From contig CBFDEM010000058.1 in assembly GCA_965603825.1 (NCBI GenBank), forward strand, positions 682,001 to 746,000: a stretch of DNA of 64,000 nucleotides. Direction: 5' to 3'. The notes beneath the pieces were generated by a model that ran no database searches, was not told the DNA's origin, and saw only the letters and a program-made list of their open reading frames with translations. This document shows positions 8,630-56,165 of the stretch, piece by piece. This DNA comes from Blepharisma stoltei ATCC 30299. Its lineage: Eukaryota > Protista > Ciliophora. A program made the translations under genes and the position numbers. Position 1 is the first letter of the stretch. Every line of letters starts with the position of its first letter.

Positions 8630-10447
8630 CTATTTTAATTCAAAATCTCTGATAGGACTTGAAAGATCACAGTTTTCAACGATGACATTTGGAGTTGCGA
8701 CTCCAGCAGACCTCGGCGAATTAAATTCTTCACTAGTCAATGTGTCTCCTACTTCACTATCTCCATACTGAGAATCACTTACTCGTGAAGAAGTCCTTGA
8801 CATCTGAATTTCATCAAGCCATAAAGGAACTTTTAATTTTTCAGTTTCCTCTTTTTCGGTATCGAAATTTATATCAAGCGTGACCTATGTGTTTTTTACC
8901 ATCAATTGATCAATGATTTCACTTGAAAGCTTATAGTGGCTTGCGTATCTTAATACTAGTTGAGCTGCATAGTCAACGTCAACTTTAAAATTGACCATTA
9001 TATGCCCATAAGAAACTAATTGGCAAAACACAATATTTTTTATTCTCTGCTGGGTATCTTCAGCATTTTCCATTTTTGTAGCTTCCAGTTCTTCTTGGTT
9101 TTTGACTTCTTCGTCAATTGAGGTTTGTATAACTTTATTTCAAAATTCAAGGTTGGACCAGATTTTGTGGTCTAATATAAAGTTTTGTAAATATTGCTTG
9201 TTGGAATCTGGGTTATCACATTCCTTGTAAAAAGTCTGTGATAAAATAATGCAGCTTTTTCCAATCTGGCTATCCTGAAAACGGTCACACTAAATATCCT
9301 TTACCTCATTTAGAACTGATCTCAATAGCAACCCAATCTGGTTAAACCCTCCTTCTGCAATTGCAAAAATCCCATTATTTCTTCTTTGATTCAGACAGTA
9401 AGACCACAGTTTTCTCCCAAAAGAGTCTTTTATAATGTTATTGAAATGATTATAGTCCTCTGACGTTAACACATCTCCTTGCCATGCTTTTTGAATTATA
9501 GAGTCCATTTCTCCTCTCAGCATCTCCTCAATCGCATTTTGTGTCGCTTGTTCGTCATAGCCTTCCTCAAAAGCAGGTAAATCTATTAATGGAGGATTTG
9601 TACCAAGATTTTTAAAAGCATGGTGCTGTCCTTCATAAGGCTCAAAATCTACGCTTTCTTTTGTATAGTTTAAGTCAAAGTGGAAAATTTTGCTTAAATC
9701 GATCTGCATGTCCACTTTATCCATTGTGGTTTTTATTGAGTCCAGCTCAGTAAAGCTGGTTTGGTTGTAAATTAATTCGTAATTGAGGAGCTTGTAGACC
9801 AGCTCTTTTTTGGTTTCAAGACGCTGCCTTTCATGGCTTCTATAGATTTCGATTAAAGTTTTGACGTTTTCGGTGTATTGGTCGTAATATCTGTTTAAGC
9901 TTTCGACACTTTCTAAATAATTTTTTAAATTTGAATCCACTTCTCTCTTACAAATCACAAGTTTTTGTACGATTTTTTCTACTTTACCTTGGCTTCTTTG
10001 CTGCTCCATTTGTAAAGTAAGCTGCTCATAATCGCTGCAGGCTTTGGCGTATCTTTCTTTTGTTGTTTCGTTCCTCTCAATTAAATTTTCTTTTTCCTTT
10101 TCCAAAATCTGCCCTTCAGCATGTGTCTTTTTTATATTAAGGGCTTGGATTTTTAGTAATTCTCCGTATGGATCTGCTATTTGCTTTCTTATATTTTCCG
10201 CAAATATTTTGGCCTGCTTTGCCCTTTCTAGGCTTTCTAATTTAATAGCACTAAGAACATCTGATAAACTCCCATGATTTATCAAGAAATATGAGTGATT
10301 TCCAATCCTTTCCAGTCCTTTCGCATAGAATTCTTCATGCATGGCTCGTTCTCTTAGCAGCTGTATGAAATCTTCACCTGCCCTTCTCCTTTGTAATGAG
10401 TGCTGATGCATAATTTCAAAACAGTCAAAAATGCTTTTTGATGACAT
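8630..10447 (-). CDS. F-BAR/FCH-domain protein with C-terminal SBF2-like helical domain
   Basis: FCH motif (FIQLLRERAMHEEFYAKGL) followed by coiled coil. 15-nt introns at 9290-9304 and 8885-8899. HKIWSNLEF-TGA(W) at 9140-9142 resembles the SBF2/DENN-associated motif. Stop TAG at 8630. Confidence 0.7.
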
Positions 10448-10738
10448 TTATTATTAATCTCAGGGAAATCATACATATTGGATCATATGAGAAATCATCT
10501 AAATGATAATCTATTAGAAATTAAGCTGACAAGTGTTTCAACTTTTTCTATAGCTTGAAGATAAATTATTAAAAATCTATTAATTTTTGTGAAAAATATT
10601 TAGAATTTATTATAAAAAATCGATTAAAATCGGAAATTGTTTTTAAAAACACAAATTTTACTTAAAAATCTAAATTTTCAGAGAAATTTTACTACACTCA
10701 GGACATTTTTGTAATTAAAAGAGTTTTAAATAATAAAT

Positions 10739-11209
10739 ATGCTCAAAGTTACTATTGCTTTGCTTATATGCGGAGTTTTTGGATTTTGGGGATCTTCAGA
10801 TACAGGCAGCGATGTGTCTTTGCACATGCCGCACGTCATTAAAAGCATCCTCGAGGAGCAAGGCATTTCAACAGTTGAAGCTAAATTAATATCACAGTCA
10901 TATTTAGCCAAAAATGAAGGAATGGACTTCAAAAAACTGGAAAATTCAATACTTAATGGAGACCTGTTTAAATATATAGATGAGTGGAGAAAGGGGCTGT
11001 TTTCTGAAGTTTTCCCTCAAGAATCCAAAGAGGTGCTGAAAAGAATGAAGACAATGCCATTTTCATATGAGTATTACCAAGCAATTACAACTTCATTTGA
11101 TGATTACATGGACAAGAAGCCTAAAGAAGAGCATAAGGCCAAAATAAATGTGTCACATGGTGAGATTGAGGAATGCCCAGTTTTGGTTAATTTCCCATAT
11201 ACATTTTAA
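10739..11209 (+). CDS. Hypothetical protein with signal-peptide-like N-terminus
   Basis: 156-aa ATG..TAA ORF with a hydrophobic N-terminus (MLKVTIALLICGVFG). No family recognised. Confidence 0.6.
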   Translation: MLKVTIALLICGVFGFWGSSDTGSDVSLHMPHVIKSILEEQGISTVEAKLISQSYLAKNEGMDFKKLENSILNGDLFKYIDEWRKGLFSEVFPQESKEVLKRMKTMPFSYEYYQAITTSFDDYMDKKPKEEHKAKINVSHGEIEECPVLVNFPYTF

Positions 11210-12190
11210 TAGTCTAATTAATAGGACAAAATCAATTATCATAGCAAGAATTACGTTTAGTATGCAAATTTATTATTTATTGTTTTATATTTTTAATTAA
11301 AATTAGGGTATTTATATAAATTTTTTATTAACTTTTATAAATAGGGATTTGGAAAGTGTAATATCAATATGAGAGATTATAGATTATTCGAGCTTACTGT
11401 GCTTAGAGGAATACTGCTAATTAAAGGAGCATCATTTTAGAGTTAAAAAAGGATTTAAAAGGGCATTTTGATTGTTTTTAACGAAATAAATATCGAAATA
11501 TCAAATATGCTGCTATCTGTTACTTATATTTAAAAATATTTATGACTTTTTTTTAGGTTGTTTGCTCTAAAGGCAGGAAGAGGAAAGAGGAATGCGGATG
11601 CTTGGGCAGCGGAATGGAGCATTAACAAGTCATTGGAAGGATATTGGAGCGATTATGGAAGCACTACGTAAATTTCTTTGGGTTGGCTTAGGCTTAGGAA
11701 TATATCATCAAAAAAGTTTAGAAGAGAAGCTTCTATGACTAAAAAATGTTTTTACGAGACTTTGCATTTTTTTAGTAAAATTGAAGTTGTTTTTATTTTT
11801 GCTGTTGATTTGACATTGTTGATATGATTCTGTTGTAGATACTACTATTGATGGTTCAGATATGTGACGCAGTTTTGAATAAAAGAGAGAAATGTAGCAT
11901 TTTCACCGCTAAAATATAAGTTAATAGTTATATGCTAATTTTTTTTTCTTTATCATTAGCTTTTAACTCATAAAAATAACGTTTTTCTCGCTCACAGAGA
12001 AGAATTCAGTATAATTAATTATTTAAATATAACTAGCATCCGTATTACTTCTTAATCAATTCAATTAAATTACCAATCTTTAAAACTCAACAAGTTTATA
12101 TTCATAATTAATATAAAAAGAATGGTGTAAATTCAAGACTTAGCTGTTATAAAGATTTGTCTTAGAGAAAAGTTTTAAGTAATAGTAAAT

Positions 12191-13720
12191 ATGGATTATA
12201 GCCTAGATGAAAGCTCAATAGAAGTTCTCAAAAAAGTGTTTGCATGGAGCGATTTTGACGGTGACGGCTTAGTTAGGTAAAAGCTACTCAGTCGCGAAGA
12301 TTTGAAGATGTCAAGCGGTCTTGAAAAAGATGAAGAAGTCGAAGCTTTATTTTTTGCTTTAAAAGAATCATCTGGCTGCAGTAAATTTAGTAGCAGCATC
12401 ACTTTTGAAGAATTCTGCAAAGGAATTATTGATCTTCCTTTCATGCTTGAGCAATTTAAACAAGATTTTGAGGCCACCCCAAAACATTTCAAACCCTTAT
12501 ATGACGAAAGCAGCTTCGAATCCTACGATTTTAATCGGCAAATGAAAGACGACTGCTGCTACAAAATTTCTGAAGGCGCAGGCCTAGATACCATGCTATT
12601 TTTCTTTGACGGCCTCCAAGACACAATTTTTAATTTCAATAAAGCGTTAAGGGGGTCCTTTTCTCCTTCCTCAGAAAAAACTGCTGACGATTTGCTTGAT
12701 ATTTTGTCTGCTATGATAAATCGGCTCCAAAACAAGGCTCAGCGTGATAATTTATCCTTGCTAGAAGACGTATCATCAGGCTGTGCAAGACTTTTTAGAC
12801 TGATGAAAGAAGTAATCCAATATTACGCTGACTCTATGAAAGAGCTGAAAAATAGGCTAAATGAGTCATTGCTTGTGAATGATTCTTTTAAACAGAGATG
12901 CAATAGACTTGAAGAGTCAAATAATAAATTAATTAAGCAGCTTGGCAGATTAGAGCATGAAACCAAAGAAACAAGAATCGCCCATAGTGAAGCTTTAGCT
13001 CAGCAACAAATGCTTCAATACCAGCTTAAAAAAGCTGAAAATTCTGAAGTTGACGCTTTAAACCAAATATCCTCAATCCAAGAAACCATTATTATCAAAG
13101 AAGACGCAATTGCACAGCTAGAAAAAGAAGTGAGAAGGCTTAACAGTATAAAAAAAATCCAAGAAATGAGAGGGACTTTAGGAAGGACTCCACAAGACAT
13201 CAAAAGAATCCAAGTCCAAAAGCAAGAAAACAGGCAAAGTGTCCCAACTTCTTTTAGATTTATAGACTCTGAAGTAAACGGAAGAGCTACCTCAGGTGAA
13301 ACAATTTTAGATTTTAGGATTCAAGCTTTGTCTCACCAATTGAAAATTAAAGAAGAAATTATTCAGAAAAATGAGCAGGAAATTAAAAAAGCAAATGCTA
13401 ATGAAACGGTTATGATGCAGGAAATTGGGCATTTAAAAGCACAAGTTTCGAATTTGTTGATAAGGTTAAAAGAAGAACAGCTGAATAATCAGCTTTATAA
13501 AATAACAGAAGAAGGGGAAGCAGTTATGAGTGATAGGAGTCTGTTTGAAGAAATTGCGGTGCTTGAAGCTAGGAGTGATAGTGTAAAAGAGGGGAAAAAT
13601 AAGAAAGTGGCTGCTTTTGATAGGAGTACACAAACACAATTTAATAGTGAAATGGAGATTATTGGCAGGAATAGGAATCAGAAAACTGATAAAAGGTCAG
13701 ATTGTTGGCTGTGTTTTTAA
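12191..13720 (+). CDS. EF-hand + long coiled-coil protein
   Basis: ATG at 12191. A 15-nt intron at 12277-12291 (GTAAAAGCTACTCAG) restores the EF-hand loop DFDGDGLVSREDL. Second degenerate EF-hand ITFEEF, then a coiled-coil region. Confidence 0.8.
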
Positions 13721-14114
13721 ATTACTAATTAATGTTCTTCAATTAAAATTCTGTCTCAGCAAACTAATTCATTAATGTCAGAAGACATTAGATTGCTCAA
13801 AATTGTTTTAATAAAAGCATTTTTATTCTGGAAATGAGATTTAATTTAGAAAAATGTTCATATTATTAAGTCTGAACTCCTAATTTCTCCTGTCTTTTTA
13901 AAGAGCCTAAAGGAAATTAAGGGATAATAAAAATTAAATATTCTTAAATAATTCTTTAAAGTCTTCATTAAATCTGGGAATTTGTTCTAGAAATTAAAAA
14001 TACTTGGATTAATTTTAGATTTTTTTCTTAAAATTATATTCCTTATTTAGCTGCAAAAGAATTACGACTTTTGTATGTTTATAGATCTTATTAATTTAAT
14101 TTTGAAAAGCATTG

Positions 14115-15614
14115 ATGTTTCCTAATATTAAAATGGAAAAAGTAGCCCATAAAGGAGTTGCTCTCAGCAATATTGATAAGATCATAACTGATGCATGGAA
14201 TTTAAAACCATCTCCTCCGTCAAGCCCTCTACTTAGTACAAAGTCGCAATCGTATATTCGAATATATACCGCAAGCTCCAGATCAATGAGAAAAGATATC
14301 AGTGAATCTGAAAAGTTTACCCAGGCTACACTCTTAACAGGTAGAATTCGCAAAAATACATTTAGCATCAAAGAATTCCAAAAGCAAGAAAAAAATCCTC
14401 ACGAGCGTATTCTCTTAGAGCACAAATATTCAGAAACTCAAAGAAATCTTTTTCAAGCAAAAAGTGACATGCTAGATATAAAGCGAGACATTTCTACTTA
14501 TGAATACGAATTCTGCAATAAAGCATCAGTAGGATTAAAGCTCATCAAAATAAGCAACGCTACATCTGGCTTGCCAAGTGTTATAGAAAACCTCCAAAAT
14601 TTTCACTCTGAAACATCAAGCTATTTAGATTTATTAAAAGTAAAATTTTCTCAAATTCATCAATTATCGAGCATTTCTCCTCAAAAAATTACTAAAGACT
14701 ATACAAAAGAGAACATGAATATCAGAATCACTAATAATTACCATAAGCTTTTTTTAGCTTATCAAGGCTTTATAAACCTATCAAGCATTCGATGTGGTAT
14801 TCAAATATTAACAAATTCTTTGTATACATCAGTGACTGCTATTGCTTTGCTCCCATCAGGGCAGTCATTAAGGACGGTAATAGATAAAAAATTGATTGTA
14901 TCAAGAGTTTCGAAGTTAAAGAAAGTTATATTAACTAATATAACACCTAAGCTGTTTTTATCATGCAGCAGAGATGAATTGTTTTTAAATTGGAATGAAG
15001 ATTATGGCAGCTCATTTTTTACAATTATTACTAACGTCAAAGGATATCCTAAAACAGTTACATTGATGCTTAGAGAAAATGCCAAGAAAGGGTTTGATGT
15101 AGTTTATGGAGAAAGTGAGGTTCACGTTAGCTACTCCCGAATACAGTCCAAACCGTTAGGTCTTTCTACATTAAACGAAATAAAGCAAAAACTTTTCAAG
15201 CACCTTTATTATGACATAAAAGCAGAACATTTACAATGGATCGACCATATTACCGATATTTTTGACAAGAAAGAAAAAAATTCTTTATTCATGGATTTAG
15301 ACTACATATATGAAGTCCTAGGTATCAAGCTTTTCCACTTTAATTCCTATTTCATGTACGAACTCGGCGAAACTGATTATAAAATAGAAATCTGGGTCTA
15401 CAAAGAGCACGCAATGCTAAAAATTTTCAAAAATTTGCAGCTGGTAGGCCAAGCTGAATCTGGGTCCTCCAATTACAAATTCGTCACAAGCCTACAAATC
15501 CTCGATATCATTTCCAGCCCAGTTACGCTATCAAAATCCCTTGAATTTCGCCAATATCTAAAACATCTTGAAGAAGAAATAAGCAGAAATGAGCAGGCTC
15601 CAAAGCTAATATAA
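14115..15614 (+). CDS. Hypothetical protein (~500 aa)
   Basis: Long ORF ending in TAA. The start may be 14115 or 14133. No family recognised. Confidence 0.7.
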   Translation: MFPNIKMEKVAHKGVALSNIDKIITDAWNLKPSPPSSPLLSTKSQSYIRIYTASSRSMRKDISESEKFTQATLLTGRIRKNTFSIKEFQKQEKNPHERILLEHKYSETQRNLFQAKSDMLDIKRDISTYEYEFCNKASVGLKLIKISNATSGLPSVIENLQNFHSETSSYLDLLKVKFSQIHQLSSISPQKITKDYTKENMNIRITNNYHKLFLAYQGFINLSSIRCGIQILTNSLYTSVTAIALLPSGQSLRTVIDKKLIVSRVSKLKKVILTNITPKLFLSCSRDELFLNWNEDYGSSFFTIITNVKGYPKTVTLMLRENAKKGFDVVYGESEVHVSYSRIQSKPLGLSTLNEIKQKLFKHLYYDIKAEHLQWIDHITDIFDKKEKNSLFMDLDYIYEVLGIKLFHFNSYFMYELGETDYKIEIWVYKEHAMLKIFKNLQLVGQAESGSSNYKFVTSLQILDIISSPVTLSKSLEFRQYLKHLEEEISRNEQAPKLI

Positions 15615-50044: not shown

Positions 50045-51142
50045 ATGGCGTCTTTTTTTAAACACCAAACAACGTTCTCTCCAAGCGCTCGTGGTAGCGT
50101 CAGATCAGCCCAGTCTGGCAGGCATTCAAAAACGCTACAGTCTGCTCCTTCTTATACAGGCTCTGCTTTTTCTCGTATTTTTAGTGATAAAAATATAACA
50201 ACGAATATCTTGCCGACCTTTTTGGTTTCAGAACAAACAAAGAAAGGGATTACTGAAGAAGATCTTCAAAGGTTAAACCTTATGAATTCTTTATATTCCA
50301 ATCCTCAAGAATCCTTATCAAGAACCCAAGTAATTTTCAGCTCTCGGGAATCCTTAGGAAAATATCAGCCAGATGATGCCAAGCCATCTGAGCCAGCACC
50401 AAGACCAAGCTTGCCTAACGAAAACCGACTAAGCTTGCCTAGTGAAAGCCGACTAAAAATCAGCACAGAAAAAATAGAAGAGGTCAAAAAGATTGAAAAA
50501 ATTACCCGAGATATTTTTAATCCTACCCTAAAACCTAGCGAAGTGTTGCTATCTATAAGAAAACGAGACCTAAAAAGAGAAGATTTGGTGAAACTAAGGG
50601 AGGGGGTTGACTTACCAGAGTGCATTATTGACTGCTACTTGTCTATTCTTAAACATACCAACAGCTTAAGAATAAGGTATACGCCTGGAGCCTCAAAAGT
50701 CCTTATTGCGAGCTCGAGCTTTAGTTCAATGATTTTTTTAAAAGGCAAAGAAATAGCTCAGCCAAAATCAAATATATTCAAATACGATTTTTTAGTTTTT
50801 CCTCTAAATGTAGGATATTGGACTTTATTAGTAGTAGATATGAAAAGGATGATTGTAAAATATTACGACCCAATTAAAGAGCACAGAACTATTTCTATTG
50901 TAATGGCTAGACTTTCAAAATTCATTCAAAAAGCGACTCCGAGAGAAGAGCAAAGAGTTACTACGAATTTTCAATTTATTTCAATGCCTCTGCAAGGGAC
51001 AAGTATGATGGATAGTGGAGTGTTTATTTGTAATGAAGCAGAAAATCTAGCTTGTGGGAAGCAAAACAGAATAAATAAAGAGTCAGTCGATAACTATAAA
51101 AAGGATATGCTGGCCGCACTGGTTAAAGCATCAAGTATATAA
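50045..51142 (+). CDS. Ulp1/SENP (peptidase C48)-like protein, predicted catalytically inactive (gene A)
   Basis: DL..L..G..L...IIDCYL, FPLNVGYWTLLVVD..IVKYYDP and DSGVFIC. His-to-Tyr and Cys-to-Ser changes at the catalytic positions. Confidence 0.8.
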   Translation: MASFFKHQTTFSPSARGSVRSAQSGRHSKTLQSAPSYTGSAFSRIFSDKNITTNILPTFLVSEQTKKGITEEDLQRLNLMNSLYSNPQESLSRTQVIFSSRESLGKYQPDDAKPSEPAPRPSLPNENRLSLPSESRLKISTEKIEEVKKIEKITRDIFNPTLKPSEVLLSIRKRDLKREDLVKLREGVDLPECIIDCYLSILKHTNSLRIRYTPGASKVLIASSSFSSMIFLKGKEIAQPKSNIFKYDFLVFPLNVGYWTLLVVDMKRMIVKYYDPIKEHRTISIVMARLSKFIQKATPREEQRVTTNFQFISMPLQGTSMMDSGVFICNEAENLACGKQNRINKESVDNYKKDMLAALVKASSI

Positions 51143-51392
51143 TGGGTGTAAATAGGTCGTTGTACCTATAAAAATGCAAATAATAAACTAATAAATGTTT
51201 TATTTATACGATTTAATCTAAGATTTCTTTTCATTCGTAGAATTTTTTCTTGCAAAAAATATCTATAGATAAGTATTTTTTAATTAAATGAGAAATTATT
51301 TAATATCACCATAAAAGATTATAATAATCTAATTCGAATTATCCAGTAAAAATATATATTAAATTTCCATTAAAGATATCAATAAATAATTC

Positions 51393-53268
51393 ATGGAAGG
51401 AAAATTTCATGAAGGGCAATTAGTGTGGGCAAAAGTTGAAAATCATCTATGGTGGCCAGCAATTGTATGAATTATTTAAGGTTGATAGTGTGGAAGAAAA
51501 CAATGTTTCTGAGTTTGATGAAGAGCCAGATTTTCAAGGCGTCATCACAGTCAATTTAATTGGAGAGAACACATAGTAAGTTTTACATAGTGCTCATTTA
51601 AATTCCAAAAAAATAGTAGACTATCAAGAAGCTTATCAAACGCATTCTAACGTAGAAGATGAGGTAAAAATTACTTAGAAACTTAAAAACTGTATCACAA
51701 TCGCAAACAAGCTTTTAGCTAAGGAGCTCGATATTACAAATCTTGAAGAAATCAACACAAATTTAATAGCATTTCTTCATAAAAATCACCCTCCAAAAGA
51801 AGAGCACATAGAGCCCAGAAGTCTTGACACTTCAGACGAAGAACTCAAACGAATAGTCAAAGAAATCAACAAGCACCTAGACTCAAAAATCGCGCTAAAT
51901 GAGCGTTCAACAGATCTCAGCGGCTTATGTAGCAGCTCTGACACCACCAGATACAAGCTTGAAGAGCTCTTGCGGCTCCTCGCTACCTTTATCGACCATG
52001 AAGACTCCAGCACTCACTATCTCCCAGTCCAAGAGCTCTGTGACAACCTTTCCTTTATCGTCCAAATAATCCCAGACTCCTCTATTCTCGAGGGCTCCAA
52101 AATCTTAAAAACTCTTAAAACCTTTAAAAACAAAGAAAAAGAAAGCTCTAGCAGCCTTTTGAAATTTCTCTCACACATCTGTCACAAACTTTATTTATTT
52201 TGGAAAAAAAGCTTGATTAATGCAAGCATAAAAAATTTGGTGACTTCTAATAAGCAGCAAATAAAAAAAGACGAAAGCTGGGGGTCAAGAAGCTTTGTGG
52301 CGCAGACAATTCCTGAGCCCAAAAAAGGACTTACTGAAGAAGATTTAAGGAAGTTCAACATGATGAACTCTTTAAATACAAATAATCAGGAAACTATGTG
52401 GAGGTATAAATCAGGGCTAGCTACGACTCCAATACAAAGTAATATTAGCCCAAGAGCAGAAAAGAGGCAAAAAACTGCATCATATGCAGATTCACAGAGG
52501 CCAAGTATTACTAGTGATAATCTTATTACAAGAAATTCAAGCCCACCAGGAGAAACAAGAGCAAGCCTTGAACAAAGTCTAGTAAATAGACTTGTGGATA
52601 TGTCTCCAGAAGAAAATAAAAGACTTGACACAGAAACTGATACTGCCTCACAGATAGGGGACGTTTTGTTAGCAATACGTAAAAGAGAACTAAAGCGAGA
52701 AGACTTAGCAAGGCTTAGAGAAGGAGTAGAACTGCCTGAAAGTCTTGTGGACTGTTATTTATCAATACTTAAACACACAAATAGCTTAAGAATTAGATAC
52801 ACCCCAGGCACACCTAGAGTAATGATAGCAAGCTCAAGCGTAAGTAAAATGATTTTTATTAAAGGAAAAGAAATTTCTCAGCCTGAGCCAAAAATATTTA
52901 AACACGATTTTTTAATTTTCCCGATTAATGTGGGGTATTGGACTTTATTGATAGTTGATTTGAAGCGCATCGTAGTTAGGTATTGTGATCCTATGAAGGA
53001 GCATAAATCTATATCAATGCTTATAGGAAAATTGGCGAGATTTATACAAAAAGCTGCACCTAGAGATATTCCTAAGCTAAATACAAATTATCAGTTTGTC
53101 ACTACTCCAGTGCCTGACATAAATAGAGGTGATACTGGTATTTACATATGCAATGAGGTAGAAAATTTAGCTTGTGGGAAACAAAATATAATTAACAGAG
53201 AAACTGGAGATGTCTATAGAAAAAGTATGCTGCTGTCACTAGTAAAAGCTTCAGGTGCAGGTGTATAA
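51393..53268 (+). CDS. Chimeric PWWP + helical domain + inactive Ulp1/SENP-like protein (gene B)
   Basis: GQLVWAKVENHLWWPAI. Introns at 51465-51480 (16 nt, AAG acceptor), 51576-51590 and 51664-51678. The C-terminal half is a paralogue of gene A (NVGYW, DTGIYIC). Confidence 0.85.
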
Positions 53269-53364
53269 GCAGAAAAGCTATTTAATTAAGGTATTTTATT
53301 GATGGAGCCTAGAAAATAATTTTTTGATATTATAGATTTTATATACACTAATAAATATTAATAA

Positions 53365-54684
53365 ATGGAGGGAAAATTTGAGAAAGGACAGTTGGTTTGG
53401 GCAAAGATTAAAACTTATCCATGGTGGCCAGCAATTGTATTATTAACTTAGATTGATAAAATTGAAAAAGTAAATGCTGCAGAGCCTGATGAAGAGCCAG
53501 AATACCAAGAAGAAATCACTGTAAAGTTTATAGGAGAAAATACGCAGTAAGCTTAAATTAGTGCTACTCTTTGCTCTGAAGATATTAATGACTATCAAGA
53601 GACTTATAATGAGCATTGCATTGTTAAGCAAAAAGTATTGGCTATTTAGAAACTAAAAAATTGCATTTTAATAGCAGACAAAATTGCTTCGAAAGAAATT
53701 GACTATTCTAAGCTTCCTGAAATTAATACCAATTTGGGGGCTTTTATTGAAAAAATCATGAACAAGCAAGAAAAGAGTAGATCATCGTCGTCTGAGACAG
53801 AGTCTGATGAAGAACCAAAGCCAAAAAAGAACCAAAAAGTAGAGGATCCAGAAGATAATGGAGGTAAAAAGCTGAAAGAAATAAATAAGCAGATAGATAT
53901 AAAAATGACACAAAGCGATAAAAATAATGAGCACGGCAGAAAAAGAGAGATCGAAAATATCAATGCAAAACTTAGCGAATTATCTAGTGGATTATCAACA
54001 TATTTAAATAGCGAAGAAAATAAAGAAGAAGCAAAAGAGCCGATTTGCCCTATTGATGATTTGTGTGACCATTTAGCTTATTTAATTCAGAACAACCCTG
54101 AAAATACTGTTTTAGAATCCTCTAAAATACTAAAAACTTTAAAGTTGTTTAGAGCAAAATATACAGAAAATTCCAATCAAAATCTAAGAATTTTGTCTGA
54201 AATTTGTTATAAATTGTATCTGTTTTGGAAAAAGTGTATAATTAATGAAAAAATTAAAAATTCAGTCAGCCCTCCAGCTCCTCCCACTCCAAAGCCAGCT
54301 CGAAAACCAAAATCAGATACCAAGCCAAAAGAAACCCCTAAAAACTCTGCAGCAAAACCTGCTGTAAAACCGCCATCGAAATCCGCCAAAAAGCCCTCAA
54401 AACCAGTTGAAAAAGAAGAAACCAAAGAACCCCAAAAACCATCTCCAGAAGATACGACTGATTGACCACTAAGAAAAAAAGTCTGCAGAAAACTCGCCAA
54501 AATAATCACAGAAAGGGGACTCCTCAAGGCTCAATCTCAAGACTATGCTTTAGACCTCGAAAAAAAATTACGAGAGAAAGACCCTCAAATGAAAACTAAG
54601 TATAAAGAAGCTTTTATCAATTTGCGTGCAAAATTATCAAGCCCAGACAAAGAGATCGAAAAAATAATTTCAGAGTTTCAATAA
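53365..54684 (+). CDS. PWWP-domain protein with TFIIS-like helical domains (gene C)
   Basis: GQLVWAKIKTYPWWPAI. 15-nt introns at 53437-53451, 53547-53561 and 53635-53649. Reads through TGA at 54463-54465 into LRKKVCRKL..ALDLEKKL..KYK (TFIIS central-domain-like). TAA at 54682-54684. Confidence 0.85.
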
Positions 54685-54725
54685 GAAAATTAATATTTTT
54701 TATCATTAATTGCATAAATGATTAT

Positions 54726-56165
54726 TTATTTTCTAGCGTGGTCTGCTAAAATAGAGCCGACACAGCATGCAAAGGACCTCAAGTAATCAATTCTAAGGTT
54801 TTCATTGCAGCTATGAGCACCGCTATCAGTACCTAAAATCCCAGTAACTAATAGCTCGGTGCTCGGGAAAATTTCAGCAAGCATACCCATTAAATGGATG
54901 CTTCCTCCAACACCAAAATAAAGAGCATCTTTTCCAAAATATTCTTGAGAGGCTCTTTGAATGGATTCTGAAAGCCAAGGGGACAAAGGCTGAAGCCTCC
55001 ATCCTTCATTAGGCTTTGCAGTTTTTATTTCTATATGAGCACCATATGGAGGGTCTCTAGTAAGCTCATGGATAACTCTTTCTTGTGCTGCTGGGCCATT
55101 AATTCCTGGAGGAAGTCTGATTGAAAGCCTTACAGAGGTATAAGGTCTTATTAAATTTCCAGCATTTTGAATTGTTGGAAATCCTTCAGCCCCAACCACA
55201 CACAATGTAGGTTTCCAAGTCTGATTAACCGTCTGCATGACTTTATCCTCAGTCACTGGCTTCCCACCTGACACCCATGACACAGATTTTACTTCATCAA
55301 TAATAGAAGCTGTAGCTGCTGCTTGTGCATAAATTTCTGGAGGAATCTGCGTATGAAGTTCTGGCAGCAAAATTTCTCCGGATTTTGAGTCTTCAATTCT
55401 GTCAAGCAGTTGACGTAAAATTCTAAAAGAATCTGGGATTACTCCTGAGCCTCCTGAGTGAACACCTTCATTGATCAGCCTTACAGTGACGTCAATTTTC
55501 AATACACCTCTAAGGCTATTTGTGATCCAAAAATGCTCATAATCTCCTATTCCAGAATCCAAGCAAAAAGTGACTTCAGGCTCCCCAATTCTGTCTTTAA
55601 GTTTATTTAAATAATACTTTAAATTGATGCTGCCGCTTTCTTCTTCATTTTCTCCAATAATCACAATTCTTCCATGTGGGATTTCTAAGGTCTGCAATGT
55701 TTTCACCAATAATGCTGCTGTAGGCATAGAGTAACCATCATCGCCTCCACCTCTTCCATATAGTTTTCCATTAATAATAGCTGGCTCTGTATTATTGGCT
55801 CCTTCAATCCAGCCTGTGAAATGTGGCTGCTTGTCAATATGCCCATAAATCAATACTGTTCCAAGGCCAGGCTGGGTGGCTTGGACTTCGCCAAATAGAA
55901 TTGGAGCTTTTCCAGGCTCTCTGATGATTTCTTTAGTGAAATTTCTGATGTTTAAAGAGTCCATATACCCAGTAATCACTGAAATGGCTTGCTCCATCCT
56001 TCCATTGGTTTCCCATTCACTATCATATAAAGGTGAAAGATTAGGAACTCTGATAAAGTCCATAAGTGTCGGAATGACACCTTCATCAATCCCTTTAAAA
56101 ATCAGATTCCTCAAGTTCTGAGCCATTTTATAAAAGCTTGGCTGTAAAAGTTTAGCTTTAAACAC
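54726..56165 (-). CDS. M20 family metallopeptidase (CNDP/Dug1/ArgE-like)
   Basis: YGHIDKQP, LYGRGGGDDG, EEESGS, HSG, GGSI and AHSCNE. Confidence 0.92.
   Translation of the reverse strand: MFKAKLLQPSFYKMAQNLRNLIFKGIDEGVIPTLMDFIRVPNLSPLYDSEWETNGRMEQAISVITGYMDSLNIRNFTKEIIREPGKAPILFGEVQATQPGLGTVLIYGHIDKQPHFTGWIEGANNTEPAIINGKLYGRGGGDDGYSMPTAALLVKTLQTLEIPHGRIVIIGENEEESGSINLKYYLNKLKDRIGEPEVTFCLDSGIGDYEHFWITNSLRGVLKIDVTVRLINEGVHSGGSGVIPDSFRILRQLLDRIEDSKSGEILLPELHTQIPPEIYAQAAATASIIDEVKSVSWVSGGKPVTEDKVMQTVNQTWKPTLCVVGAEGFPTIQNAGNLIRPYTSVRLSIRLPPGINGPAAQERVIHELTRDPPYGAHIEIKTAKPNEGWRLQPLSPWLSESIQRASQEYFGKDALYFGVGGSIHLMGMLAEIFPSTELLVTGILGTDSGAHSCNENLRIDYLRSFACCVGSILADHARK

Follow-up and report, generated by a model that had tools for sequence, protein, structure and literature searches.

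How does a gene come to resemble one of its neighbours over its first half and the other neighbour over its second? The question is raised by three consecutive genes, here called A, B and C, in a 64,000-nucleotide stretch of the Blepharisma stoltei genome (C58:682001-746000, hereafter the window; the genome comprises 41.46 Mb in 64 contigs). The middle gene, B, resembles the downstream gene C over its N-terminal half and the upstream gene A over its C-terminal half. We consider it likely that B is a chimera formed at the DNA level, with the origin, timing, retention and function proposed below. B is already annotated publicly, as 'PWWP domain-containing protein', and no account of its origin was found in the papers and annotation searched. 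Matching public proteins carry the Blepharisma stoltei label. In this genome TGA encodes tryptophan, as seen in gene C, and introns measure 15-16 nucleotides. The three genes and their parts are as follows.

50045-51142, + strand: gene A, the putative upstream parent; 365 residues, single exon, Ulp1-like (Peptidase_C48); equals P0132
50045-50230, + strand: residues 1-62 of A, without a counterpart in B
51143-51392: A-B spacer, 250 nucleotides; no detectable similarity to the B-C spacer except about 12 nucleotides directly 5' of the ATG of B
51393-53268, + strand: gene B, the putative chimera; 609 residues, model identical to the public protein P0001
51393-51464, 51481-51575, 51591-51663 and 51679-53268, + strand: exons of B, separated by introns of 16, 15 and 15 nucleotides
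51393-52237, + strand: putatively C-derived 5' part of B; PWWP at residues 8-76, TND-like bundle at residues 164-266 (51928-52236)
52238-52320, + strand: junction or linker of B, residues about 268-294; similarity to A or C not clear
52321-53268, + strand: 3' part of B, putatively derived from A, extending from KKGLTEEDL across the Ulp1-like domain (residues about 395-605, 52621-53253)
53269-53364: B-C spacer, 96 nucleotides
53365-54684, + strand: gene C, the putative downstream parent; 424 residues, with PWWP, TND-like bundle, basic linker and a weak TFIIS_M-like tail
53365-53436, 53452-53546, 53562-53634 and 53650-54684, + strand: exons of C, with an in-frame TGA (Trp) at 54463-54465
54271-54681, + strand: residues 288-424 of C (its 137-residue tail), without a counterpart in B

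Based on local BLOSUM62 protein alignments, residues 1-269 of B align with residues 1-287 of C (score 615) and residues 292-605 of B with residues 63-363 of A (score 807). A and C are unrelated, with a score of only 37 between them. Gene C was searched exon by exon and gene B through the identical public protein P0001; for local alignments and trees we used spliced models of C and of its homologues C', L018_C and L016_C, described below. In the DNA self-comparison, A 50240-50311 matches B 52321-52392, and A 50540-51136 matches B 52660-53256 (69% identity, E = 1.5e-60). Similarly, B 51381-51788 matches C 53350-53758 (68%, E = 9e-32), beginning 12-15 nucleotides 5' of both ATGs, and B 52177-52237 matches C 54202-54262. 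These four off-diagonal matches are collinear, with offsets of 2081-2120 nucleotides from A to B and of 1969-2025 nucleotides from B to C.

All three genes lie on the + strand, the chimera between its upstream and downstream parents, both of which are intact, and the spacing is about one repeat period. The near-equal offsets of about 2.0-2.1 kb, together with this order on one strand, fit one tandem duplication of about 2 kb, with one break near codon 63 of A and the other near codon 288 of C. Since the last C-like DNA match stops at 52237 and the first A-like match begins at 52321, the junction lies within 52238-52320. An earlier examination of the letters and their open reading frames (the sequence-only reading) had assigned the two halves of B to C and A, put the junction at about 52245-52320 and proposed a tandem duplication or unequal crossover. 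Both assignments are borne out at the protein and DNA levels, the junction falls where it was expected, and the duplication is supported by the gene order, the offsets and the layout of a relative in which A is followed directly by C.

The event that we propose is a tandem duplication of about 2 kb whose left breakpoint would lie in A and right breakpoint in C, near the codons given above. The duplicated segment would have comprised the 3' five-sixths of A, the spacer and the 5' two-thirds of C, the C portion bringing with it promoter-proximal sequence and three mini-introns. At the novel junction the 5' part of C would have been joined in frame to the 3' part of A, leaving A and C intact on either side. 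This would have happened before the duplication of the surrounding block, now on contigs C58 and C22, and most likely after the split from the lineage of the relative L018; strong purifying selection has since retained both copies of B. The product combines the PWWP and TND-like module of C, which would target chromatin and now has one of three cage aromatics, a fast-evolving linker, and the Ulp1-like domain of A without the catalytic His, Gln and Cys. That the duplication took a single step, and its timing relative to L018, are what we infer from the comparisons that follow.

The introns bear on the level at which the copying took place. Exons 1-3 measure 72, 95 and 73 nucleotides in B, in its paralogue B', in C, in C' and in L018_C, and the intron phases, 0, 2 and 0 in B and C, are likewise shared by all five. 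As the introns have been kept in B, retroposition was not the route. The identical intron positions and phases of the sequence-only reading hold, with a correction to the length of intron 1, which has 16 nucleotides in B (51465-51480, GTATGAATTATTTAAG) and in B' (L013 2502-2517, GTAAATTTTATTAAAG), ending AAG in both, against 15 nucleotides ending TAG in all C-type genes. Left unspliced, intron 1 of B brings in an in-frame TAA stop, and only removal of the 16-nucleotide form, conserved in B', keeps the frame.

Transcription was followed in RNA contigs from four runs of one study (X1-X4), which were taken as RNA since the 15-nucleotide introns are left out; uncovered stretches in these contigs prove nothing. 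They cover gene A at 50052-51189 (four runs), gene C at 53371-54800 with all three 15-nucleotide introns removed, and gene B at 51481-52212 (introns 2 and 3 removed) and 52185-53294. Reads across the junction of B had been suggested as a check, and such RNA was found: contigs at 52185-53294, 52198-53275 and 52185-53275 span 52238-52320, with 60 nucleotides of C-like sequence on the left. No contig covers 51212-51375 in the A-B spacer. In every run the contigs break at 52183-52214, an assembly effect of a 32-nucleotide stretch that B and B' have in common. This stretch, which encodes KLYLFWKKSL, is the sole perfect 32-nucleotide identity between B and B' despite their saturated synonymous sites; strong codon bias may explain it.

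Contig C22 holds a second triplet, A'-B'-C', with collinear flanking genes (46.6-62.1 kb of the window versus C22:270-285 kb). Identity is 75-77% between A' and A, 67-74% between B' (P0002) and B, and 54-58% between C' and C. Because A-B-C is present in both blocks, the chimera predates the block duplication. The numbers of synonymous substitutions per site (dS, NG86) are 2.05 for A/A', 2.12 for B/B' and 2.22 for C/C', so that synonymous sites are saturated; the fusion event is ancient, not recent. A synonymous-divergence (Ks) peak of 1.8 has been assigned to a Blepharisma-specific whole-genome duplication, WGD-beta, in a 2026 paper (PMC13685798). Based on the collinear blocks at this locus and on dS values near that peak, the C58/C22 duplication is probably this published event. 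In the segment C22:266000-290000 the genes for RRM, ribosomal S8 and M20 are missing; we read this as gene loss after the duplication. A look-up of public contigs encoding B' (P0002) returned none on record.

The open frame of B had been taken as a sign of selection, to be measured for each half against its parent. That comparison yields no ratio of nonsynonymous to synonymous substitution (dN/dS), as the proportion of synonymous differences between B and its parents is 0.77-0.79 and thus saturated. Selection is supported instead through the two copies of B: dN/dS between B and B' is 0.088 overall, 0.074 for the N-terminal half and 0.045 for the Ulp1-like (C48) part, hence at most about 0.09, and these ratios are upper bounds since dS is saturated. 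Judging by these ratios, both B copies are retained under strong purifying selection. The linker is fast-evolving between B and B' (dN 0.50), with indels.

The timing relative to other lineages was addressed with L018, a 23,953-bp contig from a public run that carries P0003. L018 is syntenic with the window, with genes for an RRM protein, ribosomal S8, an A-like protein, a C-like protein, an M20 peptidase and further proteins, and TGA encodes tryptophan there too (YPWWP is spelled with TGA). Its A-like gene (10001-11050) is 62% identical to A by tblastn and 65% by pairwise alignment; its C-like gene (11167-12492) is 44-48% identical to C and has the same three 15-nucleotide introns. The two are separated by a spacer of 116 nucleotides with no B in between, the layout that the sequence-only reading had expected of related heterotrichs. 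Further along L018, RhoGAP and Exo_endo_phos genes (12502-14619) lie between C and the M20 peptidase; both are absent at the corresponding place in the window (54685-54720).

For A, C and a third syntenic gene, the similarity between C58 and C22 each time exceeds the similarity to L018, so that the L018 lineage probably branched before the block duplication. To place B itself, the C-type N-terminal part and the A-type C-terminal part were concatenated, and three paired outgroups were included. Maximum likelihood gives the tree (outgroups,(L018,((A+C of C58, A+C of C22),(B,B')))), with support of 84/91. Thus, the favoured, though unproven, reading is that B arose within the Blepharisma lineage once the L018 relative had split off.

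It should be noted that several observations weigh against the proposed origin or its timing. The tree in which B arises before the L018 split is 3.9 log-likelihood units worse and is not rejected by the approximately unbiased (AU) test (p = 0.08), and trees of single partitions (C48 only, N-terminal part only) do not settle the branching order among A, A', L018_A and B. B could also look younger than it is if A and B, or B and C, had undergone gene conversion ahead of the block duplication. The spacers at 51143-51392 and 53269-53364 show no similarity in the DNA self-comparison save for a few bases 5' of the ATG, so that the duplicated non-coding part is unrecognisable. In the RNA, no contig covers exon 1 or the 16-nucleotide intron 1 of B, the contigs beginning exactly at 51481/51482, and runs X1 and X2 cover the 3' half of B but none of its 5' half. 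Some of these points have explanations. The long stem of B should pull the outgroup toward the tree with B before the split, which makes the post-split result conservative, yet not decisive. In sliding windows A and B are no more alike within a locus than across loci, so that gene conversion later than the block duplication is disfavoured. At saturated divergence dissimilar spacers are expected, and so are no argument against a tandem duplication. The start of the RNA contigs at 51481/51482 may reflect mixed splice forms upstream.

The alternative that survives best, which we nonetheless regard as unlikely, is that B is older than the L018 split and was later lost there, for example when an unequal crossover in the sequence that B has in common with A or with C restored A-C. 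Loss by such a route would be mechanistically easy, the AU test leaves this tree standing, and the raw identity of A to L018_A (65%) is higher than that of A to B (54%). However, the best tree places L018 outside the group of A, A', C, C', B and B' despite the long stem of B, and the halves of B are consistently 3-8 percentage points nearer to their B. stoltei parents than to those of L018. In the conserved core, identity between A and B (72-80%) matches or exceeds that between A and L018_A (60-82%). Sliding windows show no hybrid signature in L018_A or L018_C, and the exhaustive HMMER search described below returned no B-type protein of the L018 assembly.

A two-step origin is somewhat less probable still. 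Here a tandem A-C-A-C would have formed first, followed by a deletion from within the first C to within the second A. The final layout and offsets would be the same, which counts against a single step, as the present sequence cannot tell the two routes apart. Two events would however be required, the second of them in frame, and the junction shows no relic of the deleted 3' part of C or 5' part of A.

The same homology pattern, taken by itself, would also follow if B were an ancestral fusion and A and C its partial duplicates or fission products. We consider this very improbable given the distribution of the two separate gene types. A-type proteins consist of an N-terminal SAFSRIFS..N[IL]LP.F motif, a KKG[IL]TEE motif and the Ulp1-like domain. 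The first of these motifs, within the 62 N-terminal residues of A, is common to the B. stoltei paralogues L005-L007 and absent from B, and the Stentor coeruleus A-type protein P0011 aligns with nearly all of A (residues 6-363). In C-type proteins a PWWP domain is followed by a helical bundle and by a tail containing RKK[AV]CR...KDP.M. Such proteins are P0008 and P0010 of B. stoltei and, from another heterotrich, L016_C/P0141, whose three introns sit at the same positions; the 137-residue tail of C is common to L016_C, P0141 and other homologues and absent from B. In the exhaustive HMMER search (1.84 billion representatives, 126 hits), each hit matches only the N-terminal or only the C-terminal part of B, and no other protein with both halves was found. 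The fused form is thus seen only in B and its paralogue B', and the relative L018 has A and C only. Since B lacks the first 62 residues of A and the last 137 of C, and since A-type and C-type genes occur separately elsewhere, we conclude that B is the derived form and reject fission. This also settles the concern that outgroups might carry only the fused form: in other heterotrichs the two types are separate genes. No PWWP neighbour was found for Stentor P0011, and no C48 neighbour within 8 kb of the L016 C-type gene. The A-C adjacency is therefore seen only in two genomes in which TGA encodes tryptophan, those of B. stoltei and the L018 relative.

That the sequences of A and C were wrongly joined in assembly or annotation has next to no probability and was rejected: an identity of only 48-54% to its parents means that B cannot be a mis-join of them, the independent C22 locus shows the same structure, B-specific RNA contigs span the junction, and the public annotation gives the same 609 residues.

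What would a chimera formed by tandem duplication encode? The PWWP domain of B (PF00855, residues 8-76) is found with E = 8.4e-10 and 39.5 bits against a cut-off of 25.6. Its profile matches DNMT3B, PWWP2B, PSIP1 and HDGF. A predicted model of residues 1-290 (pLDDT 85.5) has two domains, PWWP and a helical bundle, and the PWWP model reaches Z = 11.0 to PWWP2B and about 10 to PSIP1 and NSD2. The aromatic cage, whose positions we take to correspond to F236/W239/W263 of DNMT3B, is His-Trp-Leu in B and B' (NHLWWP, VNLIGEN; B' at L013 2430-2612) versus Tyr-Trp-Phe in C, C' and L018_C. The changed positions are His18 (51444-51446) and Leu50 (51556-51558) in B, where C has Tyr18 and Phe50. The three-residue cage is thus not complete in B and B', with one of its three positions aromatic. 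The change reached fixation later than the fusion and earlier than the block duplication.

The bundle of residues 164-266, in the model, matches TFIIS LW, MED26 TND, LEDGF IBD, HRP2 IBD and Elongin-A TND at Z = 8.1-8.4, a range that unrelated helical proteins also reach (8.5-9.6), and no Pfam match to a TND/Med26 domain was found in B. The modelled resemblance to a TND is therefore a lead and not an assignment. Gene C likewise has a Pfam PWWP match, and its TFIIS_M match (E = 0.042) is below the cut-off.

In the other half, Peptidase_C48 (PF02902) is found above its cut-off both in A (E = 4e-12, 46.9 bits) and in B (residues 473-584; E = 9.6e-8, 32.6 bits). The Ulp1-like domains of A and B match SENP1/SENP2 (E about 5e-6 to 2e-5), and that of B has an Atlas structural match to a Ulp1 cluster (TM 0.80 by row, 216 residues). 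Canonical homologues in the same alignment retain HW, D and QQxNxxDCG. In A, Tyr258 (50816-50818) stands for the catalytic His and Ser324 (51014-51016) for the Cys, Asp275 is present, and Gln317 is displaced by one residue. In B, Tyr500 (52936-52938) stands for His, Asp560 for Gln and Thr566 (53134-53136) for Cys, and Asp517 (52987-52989) is kept. The His-Asp-Cys triad and the oxyanion Gln are thus incomplete in both proteins, where the triad Asp and the Trp after the His position remain.

The same catalytic losses mark a heterotrich Ulp1-like family with at least nine loci in the B. stoltei genome. Its members have DSG or DTG for DCG, have lost the oxyanion Gln and mostly carry Tyr, Asn or Phe for the catalytic His, which is kept in L007, P0014, P0015 and P0023. 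The N-terminal motif of the family is S.A[FY][ST]RIF[ST].KN...[IL]LP.F. A metagenome scan with a profile of the Ulp1-like domain of A and B gave no match. Further members are:

C55:98306-98887, C57:672341-672889, C40:555723-556322, C46, C3, C34 and C54: Ulp1-like family loci L005-L011
P0004, P0009, P0011, P0012 and P0133: further Ulp1-like family proteins

Given these substitutions, the Ulp1-like domains of A and B would act at most as a binding module and not as a cysteine protease. We infer from the domain content that B is most likely a non-catalytic chromatin-associated adaptor. In a more specific and doubtful version, the altered-cage PWWP and the TND-like module would tether the dead Ulp1 domain to chromatin, where it would read SUMO or another ubiquitin-like mark and not cleave it. 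If this is true, the heterotrich 'DSG' Ulp1-like family is a lineage-specific class of readers of ubiquitin-like modifiers.

Several known proteins resemble parts of B. LEDGF/p75 (PSIP1) and HRP-2 (HDGFL2) likewise have an N-terminal PWWP followed by a helical bundle of the IBD/TND kind that the bundle of B matches in structure. In contrast to them, the TND assignment in B is insecure (the Z range is common for helical bundles, and Pfam gives no match), two of the three cage positions are His and Leu, and there is an Ulp1-like domain, which is in no member of the LEDGF family; orthology is not claimed. A and B share sequence, fold, the triad Asp and the Trp after the His position with the Ulp1/SENP SUMO proteases (MEROPS C48, PF02902), and differ from them in the replacement of His by Tyr, in the loss of the oxyanion Gln and in the replacement of the nucleophile Cys by Ser in A and by Thr in B.

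Most of the tandem-duplication chimeric genes known from animals and plants are young, short-lived variants. The mechanism proposed for B is not new in itself, since chimeric-gene formation by tandem duplication is well known from Drosophila (PMC5460883). As in the known cases, the duplication junction would unite one gene's 5' end and promoter with a neighbouring gene's 3' end, intact parents remain on either side, and the event is at the DNA level with introns kept. Known chimeras of this kind are, however, young, segregating and mostly expected to be lost, whereas B is ancient (dS saturated), fixed and under strong purifying selection. B further differs from them in the survival of both its copies after a large-scale duplication, and in its place in a ciliate macronuclear genome with introns of 15-16 nucleotides. 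One locus thus offers the parents flanking their chimera, a relative with the parental A-C layout, and two copies, retained independently after a large duplication, that show long-term purifying selection. We regard it as a compact, testable case of domain shuffling that yielded a lasting gene in a ciliate, and as a pointer to a heterotrich family of Ulp1-like, catalytically dead proteins that has so far gone unstudied.

The gene next to the triplet is the following.

54720-56129, - strand: coding sequence of an M20 peptidase, ending about 40 nucleotides past the stop codon of C

In the public gene table the range of C runs about 1 kb into this coding sequence and the M20 gene is put further on, which misfits the reading frames. 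One RNA contig of run X3 joins 21 nucleotides of a BAH-like open reading frame (C37:410454-410474; L032 1501-1521) to exon 2 of B at 51482. The 21-nucleotide C37 end shares only TTGATAGTG with B, and we rejected it as an alternative exon of B; it is probably a chimeric read or contig. At 52965, 52968, 52989, 54340-54346 and 54385, RNA contigs from some of the runs X2-X4, and none from X1, depart from the assembly, at the sites in B in all three of these runs; strain or allele variation within the one study is the likely cause.

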